A stretch of DNA of 64,000 bases from Podarcis gaigeae (lineage: Eukaryota): assembly GCA_964106915.2 (NCBI GenBank), contig OZ066915.1; one strand, given 5' to 3'. The position numbers and the translations under genes were made by a program. The notes under the pieces are model-generated. The model did no database searches. It had not been told where the DNA came from and saw only the letters and a program-made list of their open reading frames with translations. Positions 24,944 to 59,450 of the stretch are shown piece after piece (positions within the stretch are counted from its first letter, which is position 1; each line of letters starts with the position of its first letter).

Positions 24944-25826
24944 GTCTGACACAGAGGAGCCATTAATTGCTTCCAGGTTTCCATGATCATGGCTTTTAAG
25001 GAGATGTGTTGTGCTTCAAACTCCTTCCTGCCTATGGCATCCAGGTATTTTTCTTTTTCAGCTGTGTTTTCTGTTTTTGAAGGGACAGCAACCATTCTCC
25101 ACTTGTTATTTGTTATTTTATATAACATTCTCCTCCATTTACTTGAGCCTCACACGTCTGTTTCTCTTTTGACACACAGAAATGAGCTAAGCTTCCCTGC
25201 TTGGAGCAAAATGCTGTTGTGGACAGCAGAGGGAGTAAGATTTTTTAAATAGTGACTGCACTGTTGGGCGGATTTTGGCAAAATTTGGAACCCAGGAGTG
25301 GGTGCTCTGTTCTGTGTGGTTGTTTTGATTTCCTTTTGGCCATGTGCGCCCCCCCCCTTGATGCTGCATAATGAGATGTGGTAAAATCTAGGGCTCGGTT
25401 GAAGTATTATCATACCCCACTGAAAACTATGAAGCCCAATATCTCACCTTAGGATTCCAAGAATAGTAACAGCATTTCAATAGTAACAACAGTTCATGAA
25501 CATGCCACCTTTCTTTTTCCCCGGTGGTATCCCTGAAAACTGCTTGGTAATCTACATGACTGAAGGGCTGTGCTGTAACGCTGTCTCCCCACAAGTTGTT
25601 GTGTATACAAGACGTTTTGCCCCAGATAGCTGAAACTATCTTTTCCAAGTATCACGAAAGCCTCAGACTGATTGCTGAGTGCATAACCTTTGTTCTCTAA
25701 GCAGCACATGTTTTTACAGGCACGTTGATAAAAGGGTATCATGAGTTCTAGACTAGTTCTGAGTTGTTTTCCTTATAGTGAGCAATGATTAATTCTTCCG
25801 CATTGTTTCCAATGTGTTGCTTTCAG

Positions 25827-26006
25827 ATTGTCAAAGCGCTCTACTATCTGAAAGAGAAGCATGGTGTCATCCATAGAGATGTGAAGCCTTCAAATATCTT
25901 GTTGGATGAGAGGGGGCAAATCAAATTGTGTGACTTCGGGATCAGTGGGAGGCTGGTGGACTCGAAAGCCAAAACCCGGAGTGCTGGTTGCGCAGCATAT
26001 ATGGCG
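25827..26006 (+). CDS. MAP2K7: MAP2K7 exon 8 (HRD, DFG, SKAKT activation loop)
   Basis: [60 protein letters not shown]; 180 nt. Confidence 0.99.
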
Positions 26007-26792
26007 GTAAGAGATGGGCAGATGGCGAGAGAACAGCAGCAGGAATCTTGCTGCGCTGTGATGGAACTGAGTGAAAAAAACCCCTAAAAAACAACTGACT
26101 TTGTATGTTGCTCTTCCTGCAAATTGCTCAGAATAGCTTGTGTATGATTTAATTAAATACTCTTTCTTTGTTAAACTTTTATGTCATTCTTCCTCCAAGC
26201 TGCTTTGCATGGGTTGGGTATGATCCCTAGCAGTCTCATCCTAGCAGTGCTCTAGGCCAGACCTGCTTCGTTGCAGCCGTTGAAATGCAGCATGTGTCTC
26301 GATAACTTCTCTCCAGGACTAAGAATTCCATCGCTTGCATTTTACAATAGAAAGTTGTCACTAGAATTGGCCTGAGCTTTTGGGAAACTGTGTGGCAACT
26401 ATTACGCAGATGCTGTTACGGTATCAAAACAGCCTGCATTTTGTCTTAGCAACATCCAGTAGGATTCAGCTAAGTTTTTGTGTGCATGGAACAAGGCCCA
26501 CTCATGCAGTGAGACTTTCCCTCCTCTCCCCATGTACCCATGTGCTTCCCCCTAAATCTGCTTTGGAAGGTTGAGGGAACCCCCAGAACAGGTTTAGGAG
26601 GATGGGGGAAGTCTTGTTGTGTGAGTGGCGTTCATTCTGTGCACACCCACACACCCACTTCATGCTGCATTCAATTCCACCCATGGTTTGGCTTCTGTAA
26701 TTAGGGGAATCTTGCTAGGTGCAGATAAGAGACCAGTAGCAAAGAGTAGCAAAGATTTTTGACCGAATTTGTAATAATCTTTTTGTTTCCAG

Positions 26793-26873
26793 CCTGAGAG
26801 AATAGATCCCCCTGATCCCTCAAAACCAGATTATGATATCCGTGCAGATGTTTGGAGCCTGGGCATCTCTCTG
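26793..26873 (+). CDS. MAP2K7: MAP2K7 exon 9
   Basis: PERIDPPDPSKPDYDIRADVWSLGISL; 81 nt. Confidence 0.98.
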
Positions 26874-27377
26874 GTAAGTAAAACCTGCTCCCCATTTTAA
26901 AGAAAATTTGTGTACCTTAATATGCTTGTTGGGATCTTCAGGTTCTGGATCATATCTCAACCATCCTTTAATGTATGCAGTGCTTAATACATGACATAAA
27001 CAGCAATAAGCTTTGGGGTGAGTTTTTCTTCAATTTTTTAAAATGGAGTTAACTGATTCAAAGGAGGCTGAATTCTGGCTATCCTGAACCCCATTTTTGT
27101 CTCTGCTGTTGAGGCTGGATAAGCCAAGTGATCATTCTGTTCCACATTTCTTCCCTTTCTTGCTCTCATCTCTTTCCGTACAATCATTTAGAATTGTGTT
27201 GTTTGTATGGATTTTTATCTATTTGCTTTTGTTGTAAACTGCCCTGCGCCTTATATGCAAATAGTGGCATATACATCACTGAAGCATCATTGAAGAGATG
27301 CTGATGATAATAATGCTTTTTAGATTATTCCCATTTTTAAGCACTTATTCTTCATTTCTCTACCACCCTTAATGCAG

Positions 27378-43189: not shown

Positions 43190-43540
43190 GTGTCTGTGGC
43201 CTTGGATGAATCACCTGGGTTACGTTTATCCCTCCCTGTGCCAGGCTTGTTCGTTTTTTTCCAGAAGGCCTTGGAGTCTGCCAGAGCATTCTGGGAAAGA
43301 TGAACATCTTGTAAACAGGCAGCCTGTGGCCTTGGAGCCGTGTGCAGCTCTCTCTGCCTAATTTCTACCCAGGTGCTTGGCAGGCAGGTAGAAAGAGAGG
43401 CCTGCTCCTCCTGCTTTTTGGGTTCTGTCCTGTCCATCTGACAGGATCTCTTGCAAAGGAGTAGCGGCACTTGACAGGCAATGATGCCTTCCCTGCCTGC
43501 TGGTATAAAAGGGCGAGTTACCTCAGGCCTTGTCGCGACT
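43190..43540 (+). promoter_or_regulatory. TGFBR3L: Putative TGFBR3L promoter: TATA box plus NR5A1-type sites
   Basis: TATAAAAG at 43504; TGGCCTTGG at 43197 and 43327, AGGCCTTGG at 43266, AGGCCTTGT at 43525. Confidence 0.6.
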
Positions 43541-44326
43541 GGAACTCCTCTGCTTCCCTGTTGCCTCTTCTCTGTCCCCTGGTTAGTGATCCGTTAAAGC
43601 CAGGGCAGATACCCAGAACGTCTCCTTCCTGGCCCTACCTCACTGGGGTGGTAGGCAGGTCACGCTGACCCAGATTTCAGCACAGCATACCTGCTGGTGC
43701 CTCTCAGAAAGTCTCCTCCTCTGCCTGCGTTAATCATAAATCCACCCCAATCTCCTTGGTAACCCAAGCGGGGGCTTGCCTTGTGTTTCTCACTCTGTGG
43801 GACATCCTTCGGGGTGAAGGTCGCTTGCTTGATGGCTCCCTGCTTGAGGGGGGGGGAGCCATCTCCCCGCTACGGGGAGGGGGGTGATGAACCTGCCACT
43901 CGCACAGTGAGTTCCTGGGATCTGACAAGGGAGGAGAGGCAGACAGACACACAAAGAGAGGGAAAGGGAGCGGATGCTTCTTCTTGTAAGTCTCTGCTTT
44001 CTTAATACCTTTCCTCCACTGCTGAATTCCCTTAGAAATAAACAGCTTGCCACATAAACCATGCCCTCCTCCCCTCTCACTTGTAACTTGACCCTCCTTG
44101 TGGGCCTAGAGTTATTTTTAACCTCCCATTGACCCGCATAACTTTTTTATTATTGTTGTTCATTAAACTATGCCAGTCTGGAGATAGGAGGCCTTGAATT
44201 GGCTCACGGTTTCTGCATCCCCTGGATTAAGCGCTGCGAGTCCTCCCACTTGCTTCCTGTCCTTCAGTTCAGGTAGCGCTTTGTCCAACCCCCTCCTCCT
44301 CTATTTTTCTCCTAACCTGCATCTAG

Positions 44327-44360: not shown

Positions 44361-45556
44361 GTAAGTGTTCCTCTGGCATTCCCTCTCCACATTCGGGAGC
44401 TTGGCTTGCTGGGAGGTGGAAAATGTCCTGGAAACTTTTAATTACAGCCAGTCTAATCCTGTAACACTGAATCTTGCTGTCTCAGTGCAGCCTTCTTTTA
44501 AAACAGAGCCATAAAGGTGGGAGGGAAGTTTTTGTGGGAAACTTGAGACAGGAGGGAAGAACGCCTTTTTGACTGACAGAAGTTGGGACCAGAAGGTGAG
44601 GGAGAGTAAGTTGCCTTCAGAGAAAGATTGCAAATCGAGTCTATAGAACTGAGAAGCAAGTGTTGGGCAAAATCCTTCTGGCTAGAGACAGATCATCACA
44701 GTGGATAATACTGAGCAAAGTGGACCGATGATCTGGATTAGGCTCACACATCTTCCGATTTTCAAGGAGTAGAAGCCATTAGATAGTAAACAATTTGGAA
44801 GCAGGGTAAGCTCTGGGGTCCCCAATGTGTCACTCATGATCATCATAGTGCCCTCCTCTTGGTGCTAGCCAAGATCCCCTGACCCCATTTTTTTTAAAGA
44901 AATTGAGGCTTTTTGTGATGAGGAGAGTGGGTTTTTTTTTTGCGGGGGAGACATTGTCTGCTTTTTGTGTCACTTTTATTTCTTTTGAGTGGGTAGGTGT
45001 TTAGTCTGGTTTCTGGGGATGAGGGAGGGGTGCCTGAGCATCACCCATTTTTCTTCAGTGAAATGGGTATTCTTAGATTTCTGACTGTTTGCTCAGATTG
45101 AAAAGGTTGGAGTCCCTGGCTATATGCTATACCCTTTCACTTTGTGGTGTTAATCGGAAGGGTGGCCACCACCTTCCCCTCTGCTTACAATTGGAGAAGC
45201 ACCCACTGCACCAGAATGAAGTCCTTCCACCACCCCATCCTGCTATGATTGCGCATATGACAGGATAGTTGAAGGAATGTATAATCCGTATTAAGGGACA
45301 CTGAGTATGGTCTGTATGCTTGTTTCTGTAGCAGATAGATCAGGAACGGAGAGAGGAAATGTTGAAGTTCTGTCCCAAAATCCGAACCACAAATTGACTG
45401 GTATGAGGTCTTGAGGGCTGGAAAGTGTTTCCAAGTAGCTCAGAGGTCGTGCGACGGCATTCCCTTCAACTCCTGTGCTTTCTTGTCCTGGCTTTGCTTT
45501 CTTTCCTAGGGTGGAACAAGAGGGAAATCACAGCTTCTCTTTGGGTTCTGAACACC

Positions 45557-45641
45557 ATGCATAGAAACTGCCTGCATATCGATCACCTATGGAGACAGTA
45601 CCTCCTCCTGCTGCTTGTCGGCTGGGGGTGCTCTGGGACAG
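45557..45641 (+). CDS. TGFBR3L: TGFBR3L coding exon 1 (signal peptide; exon starts at 45510)
   Basis: caccATG; MHRNCLHIDHLWRQYLLLLLVGWGCSGT; G|gtaaag phase 1 fits the next exon. Confidence 0.8.
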
Positions 45642-46020
45642 GTAAAGTCTAACAGAGTGGCTATTGTAAACATTTAAATGGGCTGCACAATAATTATCCA
45701 CACCAAAGGTGTAAAACGTTTTGCTAAAACAAAACAACAAAACAAAACAAAACAAAAACATTATTGTAGGGGAGCTGTCCAGGATACATTGCTGTATGTA
45801 TCCTGAAGTGTACATGTAAAAAATAAATTAGCAGTCTTAAAATACATTTTTCTTTGCAACCTTGAATGTAGAGCAGGTCTTTCAACTTTGCTAAATAGAC
45901 ATGTGTGCGCTCACACAGAGCCATTTGGACTTGTCAAATTTTCTTCCCTTGCAGCAGAATAGGTAGATGAAGTTGTCAGAGTATAAATGTATTCAATAGG
46001 GTTTTATACTAGGGGCTTGA

Positions 46021-46397
46021 GGGACGTGGGTGGTGCTGTGGTCTAAACCACTGAGCCTCTTGAGTTTGCCGATCGCAAGATTGGCAGTTCAAATTCACAC
46101 AATGGGGTGAGCTCCCATTGCTCTGTTCCGGCTCCTGTCAACCTAGCAGTTTGAAAGCATGCCAGTGCAAGTAGATAAATAGGTACCGGTGTGGCGGGAA
46201 GGTAAACGGCGTTTCCATGTGCTCTGGTTTCTCTCACAGTGTTCCATTGTGCCAGAAACAGTTTAGTCATGCTGGTCACATGACACGGAAAAGCTGTCTG
46301 CGGACAAACGCCAGCTCCCTCAGCCTCAAAGCAGAGATGAGCGCTGCACCCCAAAGTCAAAATCGACTGGATTTAACCATTCATGGGTCCTTTACCT
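46021..46397 (+). mobile_element. Sauria SINE
   Basis: gggacgtgggtggtgctgtggtctaaacc head, cctttacctt tail, flanking tactagggg repeats; homologous to 46898-47246. Confidence 0.9.
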
Positions 46398-46897
46398 TAC
46401 TAGGGGTTTCTCAATTCTGCATGATGCTTCTGATGCCCTTTGTCCTGCTTCTCTTTATTGGATGTACCTTCAGTGAGCAGCTTGGATTTGCAGAGTGTCC
46501 TTCATTCTGTACCTGCTTATTTTTCACAGGATGCAATTTCAGTTCCTTGATAACCAAGTACACACAGCTAAGGGCACTTTTAATCTCCAGCTCGGCACTC
46601 AGTATTTGTTTTTGACATTGATTACCATAGGGCAGGTAGATGCTGCCTGTGGGTTGTTTATAGCACAGAGGCTGTTAAGCTATCTGCTGAATTCATAGCC
46701 AGCCGACCATGGTTGCTTCCTATAAAGAGAAGAGCCCAGGCTTCCAAAGTTGACCAGGAGTCATAGTTTCTGTTCTGAATGGTGAGGGGAAGGCACTCTG
46801 CACTTGCTGTAAGGTACTTCTGCTATTTCTTCACATTCCCAAATTGGGGGGAAAACATCCATGTTGAACACTCCTGCAGCTGTACAGTACTCTCTGT

Positions 46898-47246
46898 GGG
46901 ACGTGGGTGGCGCTGTGGGTTAAACCACAGAGCCTAGGACTTGCCGATCTGAAGGTTGGCAGTTCAAATCCCTGCAATGGGGTGGCTCCCGTTGCTTGGT
47001 TCCTGCTCCTGCCAACCTAGCAGTTCGAAAGCACGTCAAAGTGCAAGTAGATAAATAGGTACTGCTCTGGCGGAAAGGTAAACTGCGTTTCCATGGGCTG
47101 CTCTGGTTCACCAGAAGCGGCTTAGTCATGCTGGTCACATGACCCAGAAGCTGTACGCCGGCTCCCTTGGCCAGTAAAGCGAGATGAGAGCCGCAACCCG
47201 AGTCAGCCACGACTGGACCGAATGGTCAGGGGTCCCTTTACCTTTA
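46898..47246 (+). mobile_element. Sauria SINE
   Basis: gggacgtgggtggcgctgtgggttaaacc...ggtcaggggtccctttaccttta; imperfect TSD ending ctctctgt. Confidence 0.9.
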
Positions 47247-47373
47247 CAGCTCTCTGTTCCTTTCTCATGGTGCCAGAGCATATTCTTTCACATGGAATGT
47301 TAAGGCAGGTTGAGTTGGTAGAATCCTTCCATGAAATGGAATTGAAATGGAATTGTACCATCAGGCTGCAGAT

Positions 47374-47480
47374 GGTGTCCCCCCTAAAGCTGTCTGTGTC
47401 CCCCCCTAAAGGGTGTCCCCCCTAAAGCTGTCTGTGTGTAAAATTCTAGTACACTGAGGAGATTCTAGTACACTGAGGAG
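47374..47480. repeat. Local short tandem duplications
   Basis: gtgtcccccctaaag x3; attctagtacactgaggag x2. Confidence 0.85.
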
Positions 47481-47834
47481 AAAGAATTAGCTCCCTGGGG
47501 CAACTTAATAACTCTGCCCAGAAGCATAGGCAGAAATGAGAGAGCCCAGGCCAGGCAGCTCCTGAGGTCGCCCTGAGAATATTTGGTAGCTTTTGTTCCT
47601 TCCAGTATTTTAAATTGAAAATTGCCTTGGTAGAAAGGCAACAAACCAGCCCAGCCTGCTACCTACTGTGTTAGCTTTCCTATTACAAGGAACTTTTTAC
47701 ATTGTAGTCTCAGAATAGCATATAGTCTGGTCTGCCACCACATTCTCACCCAGTCTTATTGTTGTGTATGTAATGTGTAGCCCCCGTGCAGGGCTAGCAG
47801 CTTCCCTGTAATTATTTAATTCGTAAAATGAATG

Positions 47835-47955
47835 GTCAGTGGTTAGAGCACCTGCTTTGCATGACGTAGGTCCCAGCTTCATTTCCCAGCATCTTCAGGT
47901 AGGACTGAGGTTGTCCCTAGAGAGCTGCAGCCAGTCAGTGCAATAGACAATACTC
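47835..47955 (+). mobile_element. tRNA-derived SINE (Squam-like)
   Basis: tcagtggttagagcacctgctttgcatg..ggtccca...cagccagtcagtg..gacaatact. Confidence 0.6.
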
Positions 47956-48655
47956 TCATCTTCATAATGAAAACAGACTTTAAATAATAATTCTCTTTAA
48001 TAGGGTTGAGTGCCAAACATGGCCACTGAAAAACAAGAGGAGTGCCATCAACATGCCCGGGAGAAACGCGGGGGGGGGGGACTAAAAGGGAGGAACCCCC
48101 CCAAAAAAAACCACTTTCCCACCCAGCAAAGGCTCTACATGCTGAGTATCCTTTGGAAAAGGAATTTAAAGGGAAGGAGGAGACTGAGCCCCTTACAGTT
48201 TATAGTATCTTGGTGGAGGGAAAGGATAGCTGACTGAAAAAGAAACACTTTTTTCCCTTGTACAACTTGTACAATCTAAAAATAAGCCAGTAAGCCATTG
48301 TTAGGAGCAATTCACAGTGACCCTCCCCCCTCAGTGTGGGGACCATGAAATGCACACTAATCCATTTCTGTCCCATCATACCAGTTCCCCCAGAGTTTCT
48401 TGTTTTATTTTTCCCTCCATCATCCTCAGTCATTGGCCAGATATTCCATATTTTTTGTTTCTCAGACACAGAATGAATTATGCAAAAAAGAAAAAAGAAA
48501 AAAAGAAAAAAAGTTAAGCTGGTGTATCATTTTGAGCTCAGGCACCTGAGCACTTTGTGTTTTGGGAGAAAGGGGTTGCCAAATGTACAGAGTTTTGGAA
48601 ACTACTTTTCTGAAACCCCGTTTCTTCCAGCATTGCTCTTCTCCTTCCCCTGCAG

Positions 48656-48828
48656 CCACCTGGCACCATCTTGCTTGCCTCCCCATGTCTGCCTCTACCC
48701 CACATCCCGTCCTCGGCTTCTGGGAATCACTGCGAAAAGGCACCGGATGCACCAGCCGGGGCCGCTCTACCCTGGGGCAAGAAGTCCATGTCATCAGCCT
48801 GAAGAAGGGATTGCCGGCAAATGGCCAG
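48656..48828 (+). CDS. TGFBR3L: TGFBR3L exon, orphan domain part 1
   Basis: CLPMSASTPHPVLGFWESLRKGTGCTSRGRSTLGQEVHVISL matches betaglycan HPV..MES..GCASRG..EVHVLNL; 173 nt, phase 1-0. Confidence 0.92.
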
Positions 48829-49252
48829 GTATGGGAGATCCCCATCCATACCACCTTCCCATGTATGAGGCGGTATGATGGGTCTTGCTACAGCTCCATT
48901 GGATACCCAAACAAGATGGCCGTTCAGCTTGGCACTACAGCTCAAGGTGTCTCAGTCAGTCAAAAAGGCAAAACTCCATTTCAGTCACTTCTTCACAGTT
49001 GTCAGGGCCTCTCTTAAGTCACAGAAGCGTTAGGTTAGCCAAGTTGTGAGAAGCAAAGAGGAACACTCTCGCGCAGGGCCTGCTTAGTGCTGGAGGTGGG
49101 AACATGCCTCACCTGCTGAACATCCAAGGGGTAAGTTGCTAGGCCGTCTTTGGTGGTATATCCTACCTTCTCTGGTTCTTTTCCAATCCCTTCTCCATTT
49201 CGCTCTTTGATCATGCATGGAGAAGGTACCTGTCCCCTTGATCCTCTTTCAG

Positions 49253-49372
49253 GTAACTCTGATAACTCTGGACCCAGATCCCCACGACAGAGGCCCCATC
49301 TTTGTGCTGTATTCCCGGAAGCCTGTGCGTTGGGTGTTGCTGTCTCCCCCTGGAAAAAACTGGACCTTCCAG
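49253..49372 (+). CDS. TGFBR3L: TGFBR3L exon, orphan domain part 2
   Basis: VTLITLDPDPHDRGPIFVLYSRKPVRWVLLSPPGKNWTFQ (cf. betaglycan VTL...FLLNSPxPLVW); 120 nt. Confidence 0.9.
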
Positions 49373-49589
49373 GTGAGATGGGATAGAGGGCCAAAGGGCC
49401 TAGAGAAGATCATGGGGGTCACTGAGGGGGTCGTTGGAGTCCCTGCTCTACGCAAGCATAGAAGATGAGTGGCATCTATGGGAAGGGTGGATGGAAAAGC
49501 TAATTTGCTACCTCCACAGCACTTTTACAAAATACTTTCAGATCTAGCTCTGTTTGTCTTCAGAAGCATCTTGTGTAGTAAGTTCCTAT

Positions 49590-49720
49590 TCTTCCCATTT
49601 TACAGATGGGGGAAATTGAGGCTGAGGGAGGCTTGCCTAAGGCCACCCAGTGAATCTGTGGCTGAGGTGGAACTTGAACCCAGATCTCCCAGATTAAAGT
49701 GCAGAACTGTTCAACTTTAA
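49590..49720 (-). mobile_element. MIR-like CORE-SINE fragment
   Basis: cccattttacagatgggggaaattgaggct...gaacttgaacccagatctcc. Confidence 0.7.
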
Positions 49721-49804
49721 TGCACTCCCCAGTGTGGGGTGCCAGAGAGGGGGGGAGGTTCTCCAGGCTAGTATATTTTACCTTTGCCTTCCTCCTATCT
49801 ACAG

Positions 49805-49988
49805 GTCTCCCCTGGCTCTAATGTTTCAGCCCCGGGGCCAGTGGCTTCTGCTGAGACCAACTTACCAAAGACGCCCAAACGCCTGCTGAAGTGGGCACGG
49901 AGGGAGCATGGAGGGGTCACCTCTCTGGCTGAATACCATGGAGTCAACAGAATCTACACACACCTGGGGGCTGGCATGGGCAACGAGG
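49805..49988 (+). CDS. TGFBR3L: TGFBR3L exon, orphan domain part 3 (3' end at 49988 GT or 49973 GC)
   Basis: VSPGSNV...LLKWARREHGGVTSLAEYHGVNRIYTHLG (cf. LLxWAxKEYGAVTSFTE...NIYIKVG). Confidence 0.9.
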
Positions 49989-50448
49989 GTAGATATCGGC
50001 TCTGAGGAAAGGGTGGCATTATGGCTGTGTGTCCTACAATTCCCCATCCCTGACCACTGGCCACCCTGGCTGGGGCTGATTGGAGTTGCAGTCCAGCAAC
50101 ATATGGAGAGAGACAGGTTCCCCATTTTCGCTACTGCAGTGTGATAAGCAGGAGGAGGGCAGGCAGCTGATCTTTTGGGTCCTGGGCTAATGCAGTAACT
50201 GTGCAGAAGTTGTGCAGGTCTGGGTCTGGTCAGTGCTTGGAAGGGAGACCATCCAGGAAGGAAAGATCTGTGCACTGCAATCACAGAGGGAAGATGGAAT
50301 ATATACACGGCACAGATAAATAAGACTCACCAGTATCAACTGGAGAGCAGTTGCCAAAGAGTTTGCATTGCTTGCAAAAAAAAGAGTAAATCGCAGCAGC
50401 TCTTCTGTGACCATTCAGTCCAGATGCTTCATTCCTTTCCTTCTCCAG

Positions 50449-50608
50449 ATGGGATTGCCCCAGCCGCTTGCAGATTAAGTAGGAATTTCCTGACCCCAGT
50501 GCACTTTGCCTCCAAGTGCCAACTCCAGCCTCTGAGAGTTTGCCTGCATCCTGACCCTCCGCAAGTCCTTGAAGTTCACATCATCCTCTCCAAAGGAGTT
50601 GCACCAAG
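50449..50608 (+). CDS. TGFBR3L: TGFBR3L exon, orphan domain part 4
   Basis: DGIAPAACRLSRNFLTPVHFASKCQLQPLRVCLHPDPPQVLEVHIILSKGVAP (cf. C..NFL...C...EVHII); 160 nt, phase 1-2. Confidence 0.92.
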
Positions 50609-50860
50609 GTGCGTGCCACGGAGGCATCGCCAGAGCTTCAGCATGCGGCTGTTGAACCGGGGGGGGGGGGGAGCAGGGGGTTGGCAAAATGTTCATAACG
50701 AGATGCCGTGTCTTGAACAGGGAGGTTGAAATTGTTCTTAGTGTAGATGGGGAAGGGGGACGGTGAGGAAGAATGAAACCTATGCAAGAAGCTGCCTATG
50801 ATAAGTGACCCTTGTGTTAAAATGGATAAGATATAATAAACAGGAGCATGGAAGCTGGTT

Positions 50861-50993
50861 CATCTAGCCTGGTACTGCTGACACAGACTGGCAGCAGATC
50901 TCCCATGTCTTTCTCAGCTCTGTCTGGAGATGACGGGGATCGAATCTCTGCCCTTCTGCATGCAGAGCAGTTGCCCTGCCACTTAGCTACGGC
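50861..50993 (-). mobile_element. tRNA-derived SINE (same type as 47835)
   Basis: Reverse complement gccgtagctaagtggcagggcaactgctctgcatgcagaagg..gattcgatccccgtcatctccag. Confidence 0.65.
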
Positions 50994-51176
50994 ACTTCCC
51001 CCGAAAGTCAAGGCCAGATGGACACTGAGCCAAAAACGAGTAGCGACAGTGGCTGGTATTAGGCCTTGAATATTGGGCAGGGAACTCTGAGTTGGGGGAC
51101 GGGTGGTGTGGGGCTTCACTGGCTTCCATCATGTGCTTAATCCTGTTGTGGTGGGGGGCAGCCTGCTCTCTTCTAG

Positions 51177-51318
51177 GCCCACCCTGGCTCATTTGACTGT
51201 GGAACTTCATGCTGTGCGAAGGCCCCCCCACTGGGGACTGATCTTGATACTGAAGAGTGAGGGAGCTGCTGAGTGGATGGTTCACACCCACCGCCTCACT
51301 GGCCGGCTGCATGTCCTG
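51177..51318 (+). CDS. TGFBR3L: TGFBR3L exon, orphan domain part 5
   Basis: PTLAHLTVELHAVRRPPHWGLILILKSEGAAEWMVHTHRLTGRLHVL (cf. NLILILK..VNWVI..GxLKVI); 142 nt, phase 2-0. Confidence 0.92.
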
Positions 51319-51458
51319 GTAGGGGCAGGACCTGCTCTGGGTATAGATCTGTAACGCTCTAGGCCAGCTAATATGCTTCTCTCTCTCCCCCTCCCCAAGT
51401 TGGTGGCAGTGGCACACATCTGGAAGGGAGCAGGGCACACATGTGCTCAAAGCCAGAT

Positions 51459-51680
51459 ACAGACGCTTCAGGTTCCAGACGTTTCAGGTTCCAGACTCCG
51501 CTAACCCAGAAATAGTGCTTCAGGTTAAGAACTTTGCTTCAGGATGAGAACAGAAATCATGCTCCAGCGGCACGGCAGCAGGGGGCCCCATTAGCTAAAA
51601 TGGTACCTCAGGTTAAGAACAGTTTCAGGTTAAGAACAGACCTCCGGAACGAATTAAGTTCTTAACCTGAGGTACCACTG
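51459..51680. mobile_element. Tigger/mariner-like MITE lacking its left end
   Basis: Internal cttcaggtt repeats; right TIR cctgaggtaccactg followed by TA. Confidence 0.7.
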
Positions 51681-52176
51681 TATAGCCAAGTGTGTCATCA
51701 ACATCAGTACAAAACTGGGTGGGATTTATTCCTTAATTAACCTGAGGTACCACTGTAGATGCATTATGCAGAATTGCAACCTTTCCTAGTGGAAGCAGTT
51801 TGGTAATTTTATATGCTTGGCTTCATGCTATTATAAGGGATATATTATGGAGGGTTCATTCTGCTAACTCCTGCCTTCACAGGTCCACTAGTGAGCTTTA
51901 CCAACCCTCTTCCATAAGCTTCCCCTGCATTCTCCCTATAACTCTAGGTTTGCCTCCTCCTCCTCCAGCCTTATTTATTTATTTATTTTTGCTAAAGTGA
52001 GCCAAGGAGTCTTACTTCCTGGCTCCAACTCTCCACCCCACTAGGCTACTCCCTCTTGGGAGTCTGTCTCCATGCTGCCATTTGATTCCCCTGGACCGTC
52101 TCTTGTTTATGGTGTGCTGCTGCTGCTCTCCATGTCTGGGCCTTGTATTGTAACTCAGGCTGGGATTCCTTTCTAG

Positions 52177-52363
52177 GCTTCGCACAAAGTCACAGTCAGC
52201 AGCACAGAAATGGATCTGCCTCTGACTGTGACCCAGCGGACGTCCCCTCGGCTGATGACCCTCGACCCTTTGCAGTTTGCAACGGAGCAGAATCTGCCTG
52301 CCTTTACATCCTACGTTGAGGCTGAGCGGGTGAACAGGTTTCTCCTTTTTGTTGGGATGAATG
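52177..52363 (+). CDS. TGFBR3L: TGFBR3L exon, orphan domain part 6
   Basis: ASHKVTVSS...LQFATEQNLPAFTSYVEAERVNRFLLFVGMN (cf. TSYTxAPVANRFHL); 187 nt, phase 0-1. Confidence 0.92.
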
Positions 52364-52583
52364 GTAGGTTTGGAGGGATTCAATGGACATGAATGGGAAA
52401 AGTGCCCACCAGAGAGCTTAGAGGCAAACCTCTAGTGACCGCTGCAGTAGATTCCTGGCATTTATATTCCAGTTCCTCCTGCACCATTTTACCCTAGAGT
52501 ATACAACCTCAGTTTTATTTTAGGAATGCACCAAATCAAAACATTTTCAGCATGAAAAGTATGCTTCCAAGGGGGCTGAAATG

Positions 52584-52585
<2 letters not shown>

Positions 52586-52618
<33 letters not shown>
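52586..52618. repeat. (AC)n microsatellite
   Basis: About 16 AC units. Confidence 0.95.
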
Positions 52619-52621
<3 letters not shown>

Positions 52622-53222
52622 CCAAAGCATATATTTTGGTGCTTGTTAACAGATGTTTTGCTGCTTCAGTGCCATTTTCCCAAACCCTTTTGAGAGCTTA
52701 TTTCCTAGTCGTTATGTGATCCCAGCCAATCAGGATTCACGTAGGGATGATAAATGGCGTCAAATAGGCAATCAGCTGTGGCTACAATGGTAAAATCAAG
52801 AAGGGCAAATGAAACTGCATTGCATTCTGAATCCTGAGCTCATGGAAGAGAAAAGGAAGGCGTGCCATATTATGTCAGAATGTGCAGACCTTTCACTTAG
52901 GTAACAGAAGGAATAGATACAGGGTTGCCAACATTCTTGGGCCCATGGGTAAGTCTGCAACAGAGATATTGTTGTGAGTACCCTCCCCTCCTCTCCTGCA
53001 AACTATTCTATGTGCTCCAATAGAATGCTTCTTCTGAGCCTAATTATAGTGCTGGGAGGGGAGGCTAGCTTGTAGACTGTAGAGAAGGCCTCTGTGAGCT
53101 GGGCACATGTGTTCTTTGGGACCACACTGGTGATGCTTGGAATAGATCATATTTTGATTAACAGCAGCAGTGTATAAGGCATATGATTGCATCACACCCA
53201 CACACCTGTATTTCCTTTGTAG

Positions 53223-53470
53223 GGGCCACACCTCCTCTAGAAGAGCCAACACTCTTTTGGCCCATATTTCTGCATCCTCCCAGTTTCACAGCCTCTCAAC
53301 AGGACTTTGCAGAAGCCAACACAGCTGGCTGGGAGGTGACAAGGCAAGACTTTGGGGGAGAGGATGGTTCCGTTACCTACCCACCGTCTACAGCCAAAAC
53401 AGAGGGGACAGAATCTATCTTGTGTCTTGGGGACCATAAGCCTATTCTTGAAAACCAGGACACTCAGAGA
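53223..53470 (+). CDS. TGFBR3L: TGFBR3L exon, linker plus first ZP-N strand remnant
   Basis: gtag|GG GCC ACA...CAG AGA|gtgagt; open in the required phase 1-0; ends SILCLGDHKPILENQDTQR; 248 nt. Confidence 0.8.
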
Positions 53471-53612
53471 GTGAGTAGCCAAGGATGACATCTCCAGATG
53501 GACAGAGGGAATCTACTTCCTACAGTGCCATTTCATGTGGATGTGGGATGGGTGGGTATTCTCTTGCCGTTCTACATCAATACCGCTCCACAGACCTGTT
53601 TTTCTCCTGCAG

Positions 53613-53792
53613 GTCTCCTGTGTTTCACCTTCTCCAACCCAGATATCTCCCTCAGAAGCCGCCACGGCCTTCCAGGATCCCCACCTTCACCTTGGCAATG
53701 CCCTCATTAACCTAGAGCTCTACAACACAGAGGCTTTTGCCAAGCAACTTGGACCTTTTGTCGTCTCAGCCAACAGCCCTGTCTTTGTGGAG
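53613..53792 (+). CDS. TGFBR3L: TGFBR3L exon, start of ZP-C
   Basis: VSCV...GNALINLELYNTEAFAKQLGPFVVSANSPVFVE (cf. GNxTFNMELYNTDLF...VYVE); 180 nt. Confidence 0.93.
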
Positions 53793-54505
53793 GTAAAGCG
53801 GACGATGAATATGCAAGAGCTGGCATTGGACGCAGCAGTTACACACCAGAATCTTGTCCCTAAGTGATTCCTCCTCTGTCCAGAGATCTGGTGGTTTGCA
53901 GCACTCCCTGTCTCTCTCAGAGCCTCAAACAGGGCAGTTGACCTGCTTGTTGCTTTGTGGGGGGTGATAAACTTACACTGTAGCTCTCAAAGGGACGAAG
54001 TAACAGGGGTGATTTGCCATCACGTTTTACCAGCTTAGAAGGGCAACGTGCATCCCAGGGAAGGTCATGATTTTGTAAGCAAAACAGCAAGGAATAGACT
54101 TAGCAGATTTCATACTGCGGCTCAATTCAAGGTCCAACTTTATGGTTGGTTGGCAATGAAAAAATAGGTATAAAAAGACAATTCCTGGATGCCAAGAGCC
54201 AAGTTTGGGGCAAGTATTCTTTGGTGAGAGAACCCCAGCAGAAATTTAAAACAACAAACATCTAGCAATGTAAAGCATGGAAATATAGGTTGTTATTCTT
54301 AGAATATGACTTTCTAAGTTCCTTCCAAAATTCCCCTCTTCTCCTGGCATAGAAAATACCATGTGTGTGGTAAGTTCAAAATGGTTTACTTACAGACTCT
54401 CCAATGATCAGATTCATGTGCTTTTCAGTGCAGCATTCAGAAAACGTTGGCAGCAAAACGGGCCCTGGTGTTTGCAGACTAGATGGTGTTTCCTTTTTCC
54501 TCCAG

Positions 54506-54826
54506 GCTTCCTTGGCAACCTATGACTCGTCTCTCAGCTTCACCATCCAGAAGTGCTTCATCTCTAGCTCCTCAGATGCTTCAGAGGCCTCAGTGTATCT
54601 GCTGGTCCAGCATGGCTGTCCTGTGGCCGCCGCCCAAGTCAGGCTGTGGAAACCCGAGCTGCCAGGCCAGGCCCAGGCATTGCCTCTGGGGTACCAGGAA
54701 CGCCAGCGACTGAGCTTTGTGTTGAGGCCACAGTCCAATGCCTCCATCCACTTCTTGCACTGCCGTCTGACTCTCTGCAGCAGGGGGTCTCAGGACCCCG
54801 CCAGACCCAAGGGCGCAATCCCCAAG
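54506..54826 (+). CDS. TGFBR3L: TGFBR3L exon, ZP-C core
   Basis: LSFTIQKCFIS...GCP...RLSFVLRPQSNASIHFLHCRLTLCSR...IPK; 321 nt; donor AAG|gtctct. Confidence 0.93.
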
Positions 54827-54980
54827 GTCTCTGGCTCCCTGGGCTGTAGAAAGAGCCTCCCAGTTAGCTGTAGAAATGAGCTGGCTGGGCTTATGGAGAA
54901 GCAGGTGGGATGTAAGTGGGCCGAGGTCTACCTCCCACTGTTGGGATGAGGCACTCTTCTGAAGCAGGTTTTTGTTTCAG

Positions 54981-55113
54981 TGTCAGTCTGAGAACGAGGC
55001 CTGCAGGGGAGAAGAGGAGGCGGTCCCAAGCCGCTTCCAGCGCACCATCACAAAGCCTATGCTAGTGACTGTGGAGACTCCGCTCCGAGCTGCCTCTCCT
55101 GGCCCGAAACCAG
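54981..55113 (+). CDS. TGFBR3L: TGFBR3L exon, ZP-C end and external hydrophobic patch
   Basis: CQSENEAC...RTITKPMLVTV (cf. CVxPDxAC...KTFTKPLAV); 133 nt, phase 0-1. Confidence 0.92.
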
Positions 55114-55629
55114 GTACTTTCCTGTGGGTTCTAGATAGCAGCCAGGAGAGAGCAGTTGGCTTGAAGGCTTTGCAGTTCAGCACCCTGGCTGCATGCTGGA
55201 GAGAACTGCCCTGCAGAGTGAGTGAGGAACTGAAAGAAACTGATGGGGGAGTCCTGCTTGCTGGGGAGATGGAGGTGTCTCCTTATGCATCTCTCCAGAG
55301 CAGAGGTGGTGGACCTGTAGCCCTCTAGATATTCTTGGACTCCAGCTCCCATCACCTCAAGCCACCATGGCCAATGGCAAGGGATGATGGGGCTTGTAGT
55401 TCACCAGCATCTCCTACCCAGGAGATTGATGCCTTGGATCTCACCATGCTACAGGCCCAGACTTTGCCAATGGCATCTTGCATGTTCATCCTGAGTGAAG
55501 CAAAGTAGCAATGATGAGCAGAGTTATGCACTCATTTCTTTTCTCCCCCTTGCCACCCGGAGGCTATTTTCTTCAGACACGCCCTCAGATTATCTGTTCC
55601 TTCCTTGACTTTGGTGTCTTTTTCTGCAG

Positions 55630-55704
55630 CTAAGGTCCCAGACAAACAACAAGGAAAAGCACCAAAGGATTCAGCCCACAAGCGGAAGACTCAGGTAGTC
55701 CGAA
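55630..55704 (+). CDS. TGFBR3L: TGFBR3L basic stalk exon
   Basis: Long pyrimidine tract, gcag|CT AAG...CGA A|gtaagt; 75 nt, phase 1-1; KVPDKQQGKAPKDSAHKRKTQVVR. Confidence 0.7.
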
Positions 55705-55988
55705 GTAAGTAAACATCCCCATGCTCTCTTGCTGGCCTTGTTTCCCAGGGATTTGGGGACTGAAATTGGTTTTAGACTGGAATTCTACTCCTGGCTCTGG
55801 GGGGGGGGGGAGTGGAGTTGAGGATTCCTGCTGCTGTGGGCTGGAGCAAGAACTCTGATCCTCAGACTTTTTCATTCTCTATTACCCCATTTTGGGCCCT
55901 GGCCCATCTCCCCTTCCTGGACAGAGAGTGAGAACGAATTTTTGTGCTCTTTCTCCACACATCCTCCCCATATCCCGCTTCTTTGTAG

Positions 55989-56099
55989 CTGCAGCTGCGC
56001 CAGGCCAGACGGTCCCCGCAGTAATTGGGATAGCTATTGCAGCCTTCCTCATCGGCATCTGCCTCACTATTGGGCTCTGGTTCATTTACACCTATACAG
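55989..56099 (+). CDS. TGFBR3L: TGFBR3L transmembrane exon
   Basis: VPAVIGIAIAAFLIGICLTIGLWFIYTYT (cf. [26 protein letters not shown]); 111 nt. Confidence 0.95.
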
Positions 56100-56945
56100 G
56101 TAGGTATGGAGAGGGTCCCCTCAGTGCTGTAGGTACCATCTATTTTACTTGAATGATTGATTTTTGGCAAAGCCTGGGGGAGCACACCTTAGCATTTCTG
56201 TAAAGGTAGACTGGGCCACATGTCCGAGATGGGAAAACTCTAAATTATAGATCATGAAACCTTTCCTCAACCTATTGCCTTCCAGCTGTTTTGGATTTTA
56301 GCTCTCATCACTAGCTAGCCATGCTTGCTGGGCCTGGACCTTGAGTTGTTCTCTCAAGCAGCTGGAGGGCACCAGGTTGGGGCTGATTGGCTTCTGCCAA
56401 CTGTCTGCCTCCATCTCTTCCGTCAGAGCCAGAATATGCATTATGCAGTCACATGTACCAAGGTTGAGTTACAGTAGGCCATGGATCTTGGGGTGGAAGC
56501 TGGCAGCCAAATGATCCCCATTGCTGTTGGCTTCTAGGAAGGATCAAAGAATGGGAAACATGACCTTTAGGCGATCGAAGATGCAGCAGCTGAAATACAT
56601 ATTGGAATCAATGGGATTATGTGTCTAGGAAATTCACATCATTATTCATTTTGGTCTGCTTTTGCACAGTTGTACTTGTCCACCCATCCACCATGGAAAA
56701 AAGAAATAGAAACAGAACAAATAGGATGATAAAAAGGCCAGACAGCCAAAGGAGGAAAGTAAAGGTCAGAGGGGAGGGAGAGGGATTTATGTGCACATCC
56801 ATATTATTGATGCCAGTCTGCTTTTTATTTCTGGTTATTTTTTATTATTAGACAGTGCACATGCATTTTCACACCTTTCTCTGAAATGAGACGGTCTGAA
56901 CAAAGCTTTAATTACTAAATTTTAATGCCAGCCTTGAACTTGTAG

Positions 56946-56990
56946 GTGGGTCGGCTTCCGGGAGGAGGAGCCAGCCTGCAGCTGAGACCG
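56946..56990 (+). CDS. TGFBR3L: TGFBR3L cytoplasmic exon 1
   Basis: gtag|GT GGG TCG...GAG ACC G|gtaagg; GGSASGRRSQPAAET; 45 nt, phase 1-1. Confidence 0.75.
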
Positions 56991-57749
56991 GTAAGGTGAC
57001 ACATTGGCTTTTGAGAAATCCTTCATTTGAGCAGAGGCTTTGATTCTGCACTCATTTCCATCTCTGGCTGTGAATGGAATCGGTGGTGCGCACTTATAAT
57101 AACTTTTAATTATTTTTCAATGTTTAATTGTTTCAAACTGGTTCTTTAGTTGATAATTTCAACATTATAAGCACCTTAGAGGTTTGACTACAACTAAGCA
57201 GTATACAAAATTTGTTAAATAATAATGAATACATATTGCATGGGTGTCCAGTTCAGCAACCGCAGGCACATATGCACCTTGAGACCTTCCTGGTGCCTGC
57301 AAGTCCCCTTCCCTCTGCTGAAATAAGTCACCTATTGTAGCTAATATAAGGCAGGGAGAGTTCTCTCCCAGCTATACCTAGAGATGCTGGTGAACTGAAC
57401 CTTCTGCATACACCTGGATTCGTTTGAAGCATCCATAATGCAAAGGCAGAGCCAGGAATTCAAGAAAGCTGTCCTTACTACAGCAGGTTGCTGTATGCAA
57501 GAGAGCCAGTTCATTGCCTCCAGGATTAGCCAGTTTTAAATATACCCAAGCAGTTTTGCTTCATCTCAATACTTAAAAGTGGAACATTATAAATATGCTA
57601 AGACTTGGAGAAACTAACATATGCAAATAGGAAGAGGGTGCATTTGTTTACCTCTGGAAGGGGGTTAGTGTGGTGGTGAGATGGATGGTTGCAGTGCAAT
57701 TGGGGGCGGGTGGGGGGCACTGCTGCATTTTCTTCCTTCCTCCTGCTAG

Positions 57750-57865
57750 ACCCTGTAGGACCATCTGCTCCAAAGCGTGAAGACACTTTGTCAGCTCCAG
57801 CTGCAGCTGGCCCTGCACGCCGCACGTGGTGCTCTACCCTAAGAAGCCTCTACCGAAGAAGGTAA
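57750..57865 (+). CDS. TGFBR3L: TGFBR3L cytoplasmic exon 2 (stop TAA at 57863, or donor after 57861)
   Basis: Pyrimidine tract, ctag|; DPVGPSAPKREDTLSAPAAAGPARRTWCSTLRSLYRRR*. Confidence 0.65.
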
Positions 57866-58027
57866 CTAGATTTCAAAAAGTTCATGGGAGGAATGAATTT
57901 GGAGAATTGGAAGGGGATTATTTATTGACTTGGATCTTTTGTGCCCCCTGCATTTCCAGAGTTTGCCTCTGCAAATATGCAGGCTTATGCAAGTAGCGTG
58001 GTGATGTTTTGGGGTGATTTTTGTTGA

Positions 58028-58962
58028 TAATAATAATACAATAATTTATTATTTGTACCCTGCCCATACGGCTGGGTTTACCCAGCCATTCTGGGCTGCT
58101 TCCATCAAAATATTAAAATACAGTAGTCCTTCAGATATTAAAAGCTTCCCTAAACAGGGCTGCCTTCAGATGTCTCCTAAAAGTCTGGTAGTTGTTTTTT
58201 CCTTTGACATCTGGTGGGACAGTATTCCACAGGGTGGGAGCCATTACCGAGAAGGCCCTTTGCCTGGTTCCCTGTAACTTTGCTTCTTGCAGTGAGGGAA
58301 CCGCCAGAAGGCCCTCAGTGCTGGAGCTCAGTGTCTGGGCAGAATGACGGGGGTGGAGCCGCTCCTTCAGGAAAACTGGACTGAGGCTGTTTAGAGCTTT
58401 AAAGGTCAGCACCTACACTTTGAATTGTGCTCGGAAACGTACTGGGAGCCAATGTAGGTTTTTCAAGACTAGTGGTATGTGGTCTCAGCGGCTGCTCCCA
58501 GTCACCAGTCTAGCTGCCGCATTCTGGATTAGTTGTAGTTTCTGGGTCACCTTCAAAGGTAGCCCCATGTAGAGCGCATTGCAGTAGTCCAAGCAGGAGA
58601 TAACTAGAGCATGTACCACTCTGGTGAGACAGTCTGCAGGTAGAAAGGGTCTCAGCCTGCATACCAGATGGAGCTGGTAAACAGCTACCCTGGACACAGA
58701 ATTGACCTGCGCCTCCATGGACAGCTGTGAGTCCAAAATGACTCCCAGGCTGCACACCTGGTCCTTCAGGGGCACAGTTACCCCATTCAGGACCAGGGAG
58801 TCCTCCATACCTGCCCGCCCCCTGTCCCCCCAAAACAGTACTTCTGTCTTGTCAGGATTCAACCCCAATCTGTTAGCTGTCATCCAATCTCCAACCGCCT
58901 CCAGACACACCCACAGGACCTTCACTGCCTTCACCGGTTCCGATTTGAAAGAGAGATAGAGC
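58028..58962 (-). mobile_element. 5'-truncated L2-clade LINE (RT C-terminus, broken frame)
   Basis: WMTANRLGLNPDKTEV, LGVILDSQLSM, LDYCNALYMGLP, LQLIQNAAARL, RAFSVMAPTLWN; AAT-rich tail. Confidence 0.92.
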
Positions 58963-59443
58963 TTTCAGCACATTTGTTTAACTTTTAATGGATTTTTGTT
59001 GCATATTGTACTTTGTCTGTTGTCTCTGCAACTCACTTTGGGACTTGAAGCAATACACCAGTTGAATAGATGGAATTGTTCATGGGATGCCTTCCATGTC
59101 TGTAACTGAGAGATGGAAGTCAAAACTAGTAGGGATCTTGTATTTGAAAATGGTCCTTTTCTGTTGTTCATCTCATATTAGCATTCACAAATGAGATACT
59201 CCAGCCCGAATGGGAGGAAATTTTTTAGGGTCAGTTATAAAACCATTCATCTACAGCATGAAGCACTGCAACTGTTAGCTGATGAGTCTGTGGTGGTAGC
59301 ACAATGACGAATATGTAAAATGTTTGCAGGACGAGAGAGGAATGGGGAGCCTCGGTCTGCAATAGGTTGGCAAGAGAGGCAGGCAAAGCAGGGCCAGTGG
59401 GGAAGTCTAGCCTGTCATCCGCACTGATTTATCTATCTTGTAG

Positions 59444-59450
59444 GTTCTAG
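59444..59450 (+). CDS. TGFBR3L: Possible terminal TGFBR3L exon start (...RRRF*), then 3'UTR
   Basis: ctgat branch-like motif, tcttgtag|G TTC TAG; fits the phase-2 donor at 57861. Confidence 0.45.

Follow-up and report, generated by a model that had tools for sequence, protein, structure and literature searches.

An orphan-domain-bearing TGFBR3L orthologue downstream of MAP2K7 in the lizard Podarcis gaigeae

A gene of 15 exons was delimited on the + strand, at positions 45557-57865, of a 64,000-nucleotide stretch of the genome of the lizard Podarcis gaigeae (GenBank assembly GCA_964106915.2, contig OZ066915.1; the whole stretch is referred to here as the window). The analyses indicate that it is very probably the lacertid orthologue of TGFBR3L, a MAP2K7-adjacent gene whose predicted product combines an orphan domain maintained by selection with a ZP-C domain, and has lost the core of ZP-N. 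The TGFBR3L literature that was searched portrays the protein as a ZP-C domain on a membrane anchor and leaves its inhibin B preference unexplained. The orthologues of reptiles, turtles, lungfish and ray-finned fish show that the ZP-C-only protein is a derived, minimal state.

Gene structure, splicing and protein architecture

The exons were determined by splice-signal scans, orthologue alignment and RNA contigs; exons 1 to 4, 14 and 15 are based on orthologue alignment and splice signals only, and exons 5 to 13 also on the contigs. All exons showed AG acceptors and GT donors in one consistent phase, and the phases agreed at 14 of 14 junctions when the exons were joined for the phase and stop check, the alignments and the trees. 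The joined coding sequence of 2295 nucleotides (nt) encodes 764 amino acids (aa) without any internal stop and ends in a TAA codon at 57863-57865, about 250 nt upstream of polyadenylation signals near 58112 and 58137. The window is free of N runs. The closest match to its exons was the Podarcis muralis model (808 aa), followed by that of Zootoca. Identity to lacertid models was 93-100% in most exons, 83-87% in exons 1, 11 and 12, and about 78-87% in exon 14. The exon encoding the signal peptide is kept in two other lizards, Elgaria and Tiliqua, in which the initiator methionine, the hydrophobic core and the phase-1 donor are the same.

The initial annotation had described 15 exons in consistent phase, an open reading frame of about 759 aa and a gene range ending at 59450. 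The exon structure was borne out, with a length of 764 aa when the acceptor used in the RNA contigs (51162) is taken for exon 6. An in-frame acceptor at 51177, located 15 nt 3' of this site, would shorten the reading frame to 759 aa, and was overruled as the used site by the contigs. The 3' limit had to be withdrawn to 57865: orthologue alignment gave no support for coding sequence in 57866-59450, and the TAG at 59448-59450 closes an unsupported open reading frame. The choice between the two exon 6 acceptors adds or removes five residues in a loop homologous to the TGF-beta binding loop of betaglycan, and squamate RefSeq models differ by species in using the equivalent of 51162 or of 51177. 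Differences among models were also seen at the N terminus, where the Podarcis muralis model has a 44-aa extension from an upstream exon that would bury the signal peptide, and where the Tiliqua model XP_066469001.1 (757 aa) begins in another frame and misses the conserved signal peptide.

Splicing was followed in contigs from four runs, representing two related organisms and four studies, which were aligned to 50430-56429. Twelve small runs of a related organism contained 10-14% of the words of a 6-kb stretch, which is about its exon share. Exons are covered by the contigs, whereas eight consecutive introns with GT..AG ends, between exon 5 and exon 13, are skipped; the joints between exons 5-6, 6-7, 7-8, 8-9, 9-10, 11-12 and 12-13 were observed, and that between exons 10 and 11 in one contig record. 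A single contig of 1152 nt is continuous from exon 5 to exon 10 and holds orphan exons and ZP-C exons in one piece. Another, of 1144 nt, contains exons 5 to 7 and 30 nt of exon 8, preceded by 610 nt located 5' of exon 5, which by their length would correspond to exons 1 to 4 plus 48 nt. Contigs that skip eight successive introns argue for an RNA origin of the runs and are hard to explain otherwise. As the initial annotation had supposed, the orphan domain and ZP-C are joined in one mRNA in related lizards.

Some contigs in all four runs were unbroken over 54850-55110 and cross the exon 11 acceptor, which means that intron 10 (54827-54980) is retained or that an alternative acceptor is used at 54850. 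When exon 10 is read on into intron 10, a stop is reached after 40 codons, and the resulting form would be without the transmembrane helix. Several RefSeq isoforms also exist for many species. That the main lizard product is such a shorter or soluble isoform, generated by alternative splicing or intron 10 retention and ending before the helix, is nevertheless unlikely: the canonical joint between exons 10 and 11 is also present, the contigs give no isoform proportions, and unprocessed RNA often still contains short introns.

The full-length lizard TGFBR3L contains a complete orphan domain of the betaglycan type and has the layout of a type I membrane protein. Its parts are ordered as signal peptide, two-lobed orphan domain (exons 2 to 7), disordered linker, ZP-C, basic stalk, transmembrane helix and short tail, and every feature listed in the initial annotation (signal peptide, six orphan exons, linker, six-cysteine ZP-C, stalk, transmembrane helix and divergent tail) was recovered. 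The ZP-C cysteines, encoded in exons 10 and 11, are at aa 515, 536, 584, 589, 606 and 613 and were invariant in 38 sequences. The transmembrane helix coincides with the hydrophobicity maximum, near aa 682-707, and is followed by a cytoplasmic tail of about 55 aa that ends in basic residues and is missing the C-terminal ...STA of betaglycan. Ser-Gly pairs occur only at aa 26, in the signal peptide, and at aa 716, in the cytoplasmic part, leaving none in the extracellular part of the 764-aa model. Within the linker of about 110 aa, only the first strand of ZP-N and two cysteines (Cys423 and Cys441) could be aligned, and a Pfam search of exons 8 and 9 and of the Podarcis muralis model gave no ZP-N match. 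A complete ZP module (ZP-N plus ZP-C) is not formed, ZP-C alone being present. Intron 8 measures 142 nt, and the RNA joins exons 7, 8, 9 and 10 directly.

The window was searched exon by exon, and the whole-protein searches and fold prediction were carried out with the Podarcis muralis orthologue. Pfam searches of single exons detected ZP-C only; as PF26060 went undetected by the local Pfam search in genuine TGFBR3 proteins as well, PDB matches, precomputed Pfam labels and the fold served to identify the orphan domain. PF26060 (TGFBR3_N) and PF00100 were precomputed on all orthologues. Exon 4 alone matched TGFBR3 orphan-domain chains in the PDB (E-value in Table 1), and the Podarcis muralis model aligned to residues 9-329 of the 339-residue rat orphan construct (E-value 1e-30) and to betaglycan ZP-C (E-value 6e-22), with ZP-N unmatched. 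An AlphaFold model of Podarcis muralis residues 45-735, calculated with 38 aligned sequences, was confident for the orphan region and for ZP-C, in agreement with the domains initially proposed, and the linker of about 110 residues had a predicted local distance difference test score (pLDDT) of about 25. The top Foldseek matches were the orphan domains of zebrafish and rat betaglycan (E-value 5e-22) and the ZP-C of rat and mouse betaglycan (template modelling score 0.83-0.88); the orphan region of human endoglin was also matched (E-value 1e-12).

Ligand contacts and selection on the orphan domain

Binding of TGF-beta by betaglycan needs the orphan-domain residues F49, L210, L213, F250 and D253, the mutation of which abolishes binding, and also a hydrophobic FG-loop motif of ZP-C (A158, I161, W162 and M165), which contacts TGF-beta (PMC11865472). 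The contact motifs were almost invariant across 15 TGFBR3 sequences, from fish to mammals. At the five orphan positions the lizard protein has L, P, F, T and H, respectively, three of these substitutions being non-conservative, and its binding loop contains extra residues at the junction of exons 5 and 6. The place of the betaglycan motifs is taken by other motifs that are conserved within the TGFBR3L clade, and the FG-loop motif is replaced by an acidic, variable segment throughout that clade, mammals included. Because the contact motifs are replaced both in the orphan domain and in the FG loop, a betaglycan-like TGF-beta site is unlikely, and lizard TGFBR3L probably does not bind TGF-beta in the way betaglycan does. 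A second ligand surface on the reptile orphan domain is possible. The literature examined does not specify which residues bind inhibin.

The window was compared codon by codon, in pairs, with the more distant Elgaria and Tiliqua, as no coding contigs were found for the Zootoca and Rhineura isoforms. The ratio of non-synonymous to synonymous substitution rates (dN/dS) was 0.22-0.34 for orphan exons 2 to 7, compared with 0.31-0.40 for ZP-C, and protein identity to the same two lizards was 73-77% in the orphan domain compared with 65-66% in ZP-C. These values point to purifying selection on both domains and do not support neutral decay, which the initial annotation had named as a possible refutation. 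The loss of the TGF-beta contact residues, the long stem branch of the reptile orphan clade (1.1 changes per site) and the ratio of 6 synonymous to 6 non-synonymous differences between close relatives would be expected if the orphan exons were spliced in but functionally dead, a relic decaying toward the short form of mammals. This explanation is very improbable, given that every squamate and turtle model has an uninterrupted reading frame, that orphan dN/dS is no higher, and orphan identity greater, than the ZP-C values, and that the domain has clade-specific conserved motifs and a confidently predicted fold.

In the mouse, TGFBR3L is a protein of 297 aa that acts as inhibin B co-receptor of pituitary gonadotropes (Brule et al., 2021, PMC8673766), and selective inhibin B binding and gonadotrope expression are known only in mouse and human (PMC8673766). 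By orthology with the mouse protein, the lizard ZP-C would act as a co-receptor for inhibin B and assist inhibin in sequestering activin type II receptors. The orphan domain that lizards have retained would have a role preserved by selection, either as the binder of some ligand or partner or as a scaffold.

Orthology and loss of domains across lineages

A search with the Tiliqua protein showed that RefSeq and UniProt hold predictions of the long form for Podarcis muralis and many other reptiles, with more than 25 squamates and more than 12 turtles represented. The initial annotation had left undecided whether automated annotations contained this model, which is present for dozens of reptiles; the gene models are already public, their practical novelty is limited, and what is new is their reading. 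A literature search found no publication discussing the long TGFBR3L: evolutionary and taxon terms led to a catfish genome paper that names the gene once, and the TGFBR3L literature found under 'orphan domain' describes a ZP-C-type protein only, where examined for TGFBR3L. Short Ensembl-type turtle models of 311-317 aa, and orthologue models that are clearly flawed at the 5' end, could be taken to mean that the long reading frame is a chimera of two transcription units and that the real TGFBR3L is as short as in mammals. Such a chimera is scarcely credible, as individual RNA contigs in four runs connect orphan exons to ZP-C exons through exact GT..AG joints, the phases match at every junction, and predictions for more than 35 reptiles show the same colinear arrangement.

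Genomic context placed MAP2K7 kinase-domain exons upstream of the gene on the same strand, at 25782-26897 (+), while the gene itself begins at about 44-45.5 kb. The kinase motifs are present in these exons, and their best PDB match was MAP2K7 (E-value 1.6e-35, compared with 4e-23 for MAP2K4). Human TGFBR3L likewise lies directly downstream of MAP2K7. In the turtle Mauremys reevesii, a 759-aa protein filed as 'MAP2K7 isoform X8' carries PF26060 and PF00100 and is a MAP2K7/TGFBR3L read-through fusion model.

An exhaustive search with the ZP-C exon (54506-54826) gave reptile proteins named 'transforming growth factor beta receptor type 3-like' as best matches. The tree of the segment from ZP-C to the transmembrane helix, which is the region common to all family members, recovered a tetrapod TGFBR3L clade of 24 rows, two marsupials and two eutherians among them (support 100/98). 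Nested in this clade, the window sequence paired with Podarcis in a squamate clade that mirrors the species tree, and TGFBR3, including the 844-aa TGFBR3 of Podarcis itself, formed a separate clade (93/97). The orphan-domain tree was split (99/96) between L-type sequences of reptiles, lungfish, sturgeon and Amia and those of TGFBR3, and this was stable with or without endoglins; the placement of endoglin within the TGFBR3L-type orphan clade is probably a long-branch effect and was disregarded. The concordance of both trees indicates that the orphan exons were inherited with the gene and not captured from TGFBR3. On the sequence evidence of MAP2K7 synteny and the ZP-C tree, the gene is identified as a TGFBR3L orthologue, as initially annotated, and both halves of the protein trace back to an old, full-length betaglycan paralogue and not to TGFBR3 itself. 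There is a negligible probability that the gene is orthologous to TGFBR3, or arose by a recent duplication of TGFBR3 in lizards and lies near MAP2K7 by chance, since, although the Varanus, Pogona and Anolis orthologues are named 'transforming growth factor beta receptor type 3' by some sources and the orphan domain aligns to betaglycan over its full length, Podarcis, Sceloporus, Rhineura and Varanus each possess, apart from this gene, a ZP-N-containing TGFBR3 of 840-845 aa, both domain trees set the gene outside TGFBR3, contrary to what the initial annotation had named as a possible refutation, and motifs invariant in TGFBR3 are replaced.

The Amia ocellicauda protein named TGFBR3 and an 867-aa protein of Acipenser sinensis grouped with the TGFBR3L clade in both trees, and ray-finned fish seem to keep a full-length TGFBR3L-type paralogue filed under another name.

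The domain content of TGFBR3L differed among lineages. According to Pfam and alignment, ZP-N is complete in turtles, lungfish, coelacanth, Amia, sturgeon, one caecilian and two salamanders; in turtles, lungfish, coelacanth, Amia and sturgeon it is found besides the orphan domain and ZP-C. In squamates it is reduced to the first strand and two cysteines. In the caecilian and salamander models, ZP-N and ZP-C are present, and the total length of 474-501 aa leaves no space for an orphan domain; of the three domains, the frog and mammal proteins have ZP-C only. The models of amphibians and Sphenodon may lack some 5' sequence. This distribution indicates an ancestral TGFBR3L with orphan domain, ZP-N and ZP-C, from which losses were mosaic and lineage-specific. 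The squamate architecture would have been reached by deletion of the ZP-N core from this ancestral protein, on the squamates' own line, and the lizard form is not, on this comparison, an intermediate toward mammals. The initial annotation had regarded it as such an intermediate, which the ZP-N kept by turtles, lungfish, coelacanth, Amia and sturgeon contradicts. It had also derived mammalian TGFBR3L by stepwise exon loss from a betaglycan paralogue: the mammalian protein does derive from a full-length betaglycan paralogue, and the single stepwise series gives way to mosaic losses. The claim of a distinct architecture stands, as an orphan domain and ZP-C without ZP-N differ from betaglycan, endoglin and mammalian TGFBR3L.

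Several points weigh against the interpretation of the gene as a long TGFBR3L with a selected orphan domain. The RNA evidence comes from related species and not from Podarcis gaigeae, the RNA nature of the runs is a guess and their tissue is undisclosed, exons 1 to 4, 14 and 15 are outside the RNA-aligned stretch, and the contigs unbroken across the exon 11 acceptor represent a second transcript form. Whole-protein homology and fold are those of the Podarcis muralis orthologue and not of the model joined from the window. A dN/dS near 0.3 is moderate, dS (0.45-0.88) is in a range where some saturation may occur, and the equal synonymous and non-synonymous counts in the orphan exons of close relatives, drawn from RNA-contig differences, comprise too few sites to be decisive. 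Inhibin B binding and gonadotrope expression in the lizard are extrapolated from the mouse alone.

A broader proposal, in which TGFBR3L is a third full-length member of the betaglycan/endoglin family that was trimmed differently among tetrapod lineages, and in which the selected orphan domain of squamates and turtles binds a ligand other than TGF-beta, is tentative and, taken as a whole, rather doubtful. If it is true, reptile TGFBR3L would act as a co-receptor with two binding sites, and the inhibin B co-receptor of mammals would be its minimal remnant. The orthologues constitute a natural domain-deletion series with which the contribution of each domain to the binding of inhibin or other ligands can be addressed, and the naming of several database entries is corrected.

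Features of the locus and comparison with known systems

The coordinates of the exons, and of two possible upstream exons, are given in Table 1.

Table 1. Exons of the TGFBR3L gene and possible upstream exons in the window (positions of the 64,000-nt stretch).
Feature	Position	Strand	Evidence
Possible 5' non-coding or alternative first exon	44209-44274	+	100% match to residues 2-23 of Zootoca RefSeq model
Possible upstream exon, source of the 44-aa N-terminal extension of the P. muralis model	45316-45405	+	90% match to residues 1-30 of Podarcis muralis model; predicted acceptor 45510
Exon 1: start codon and signal peptide, phase 1 end	45557-45641	+	Donor CAG/GTAAAG (exon/intron)
Exon 2: orphan domain, first lobe	48656-48828	+	97% identity to P. 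muralis model; splice signals
Exon 3: orphan domain	49253-49372	+	93% identity to P. muralis model; phase 0 at both ends
Exon 4: orphan domain	49805-49988	+	PDB orphan-chain match, E-value 4.7e-6; donor 49988 agrees with P. muralis protein
Exon 5: orphan domain, OD2 loop homologous to betaglycan L208/L210/L213	50449-50608	+	Exon 5-6 joint in four runs
Exon 6: orphan domain, starts within loop homologous to TGF-beta binding loop	51162-51318	+	RNA acceptor
Exon 7: last orphan-domain exon	52177-52363	+	RNA joints on both sides; 97-100% identity to lacertid proteins
Exon 8: linker with ZP-N remnant (first strand, Cys423)	53223-53470	+	RNA joints; alignment
Exon 9: Cys441 (equivalent of last ZP-N Cys), then start of ZP-C	53613-53792	+	RNA joints; alignment
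Exon 10: ZP-C core, phase 0 at both ends	54506-54826	+	Pfam PF00100 at 8e-9; RNA boundaries
Exon 11: end of ZP-C (Cys606, Cys613) and FG-loop region	54981-55113	+	Exon 10-11 RNA joint
Exon 12: basic juxtamembrane stalk	55630-55704	+	RNA joints of exons 11-12 and 12-13
Exon 13: transmembrane helix	55989-56099	+	Hydrophobicity peak; RNA joint; donor CAG/GTAGGT
Exon 14: cytoplasmic tail, 45 nt	56946-56990	+	Splice signals; lacertid protein alignment
Exon 15: end of tail and TAA	57750-57865	+	100% identity to P. muralis residues 770-799; splice site

Upstream of the gene, two exact SF-1-type motifs (CCAAGGCCA) were found on the - strand at 43197-43205 and 43327-43335, 130 nt apart, and the first RefSeq-type exon follows about 0.9 kb further downstream; the SF-1 motif YCAAGGYCA was not enriched in the window (4 found, 4.5 expected). 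Intron 6 contains, at 51430-51830, an interspersed repeat with inverted copies of a core of the type GGTACCTCAGGTTAAGAAC. The summed contig depth on this repeat was 40,000-330,000 in the four runs, compared with 3-45 on most exon bins, and ARAGORN detected no tRNA-like head or part in it. A (CA)n microsatellite is located in intron 7 at about 52560-52600. Downstream of the stop codon, at 58134-58964 on the - strand, open frames resemble the C-terminus of a non-LTR (long terminal repeat) retrotransposon reverse transcriptase. Outside the lizards, two proteins of the pipefish Dunckerocampus (3056 and 1970 aa) showed 9 and 6 stretches, respectively, that match the lizard ZP-C exon, which looks like a tandem expansion of ZP-C-like domains.

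Compared with other reptiles, the TGFBR3-like models of squamates represent the same gene, with PF26060 and PF00100 throughout, and those of lacertids are colinear with the window. The turtle models (Trachemys isoforms of 743-827 aa) also represent the same gene and have ZP-N (PF23344) in addition. Several of the models from other reptiles have doubtful N-termini, as in the Podarcis extension and the Tiliqua frame mentioned above.

Endoglin resembles the lizard protein in that its orphan domain precedes a ZP-type module and a transmembrane helix, but sequence similarity is much lower and endoglin retains ZP-N. Fish endoglins stand beside the TGFBR3L-type orphan clade, but on a very long branch that was flagged as unsafe. 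The likeness to betaglycan (TGFBR3) is closer and comprises the two-lobed orphan domain (PF26060), ZP-C, the transmembrane helix, the order of parts and a matching fold. Unlike betaglycan, the lizard protein is without a ZP-N core, an extracellular Ser-Gly site for glycosaminoglycan attachment and the C-terminal ...STA, its TGF-beta contact positions and FG-loop motif are replaced, and it belongs to a separate, old paralogue. With mammalian TGFBR3L it shares the MAP2K7 synteny, the six ZP-C cysteines, the single transmembrane helix and the short tail, and the hydrophobic FG-loop motif of betaglycan is missing in both; the lizard protein differs from the mammalian one by about 470 additional N-terminal residues, which comprise the orphan domain and the linker with the ZP-N remnant.

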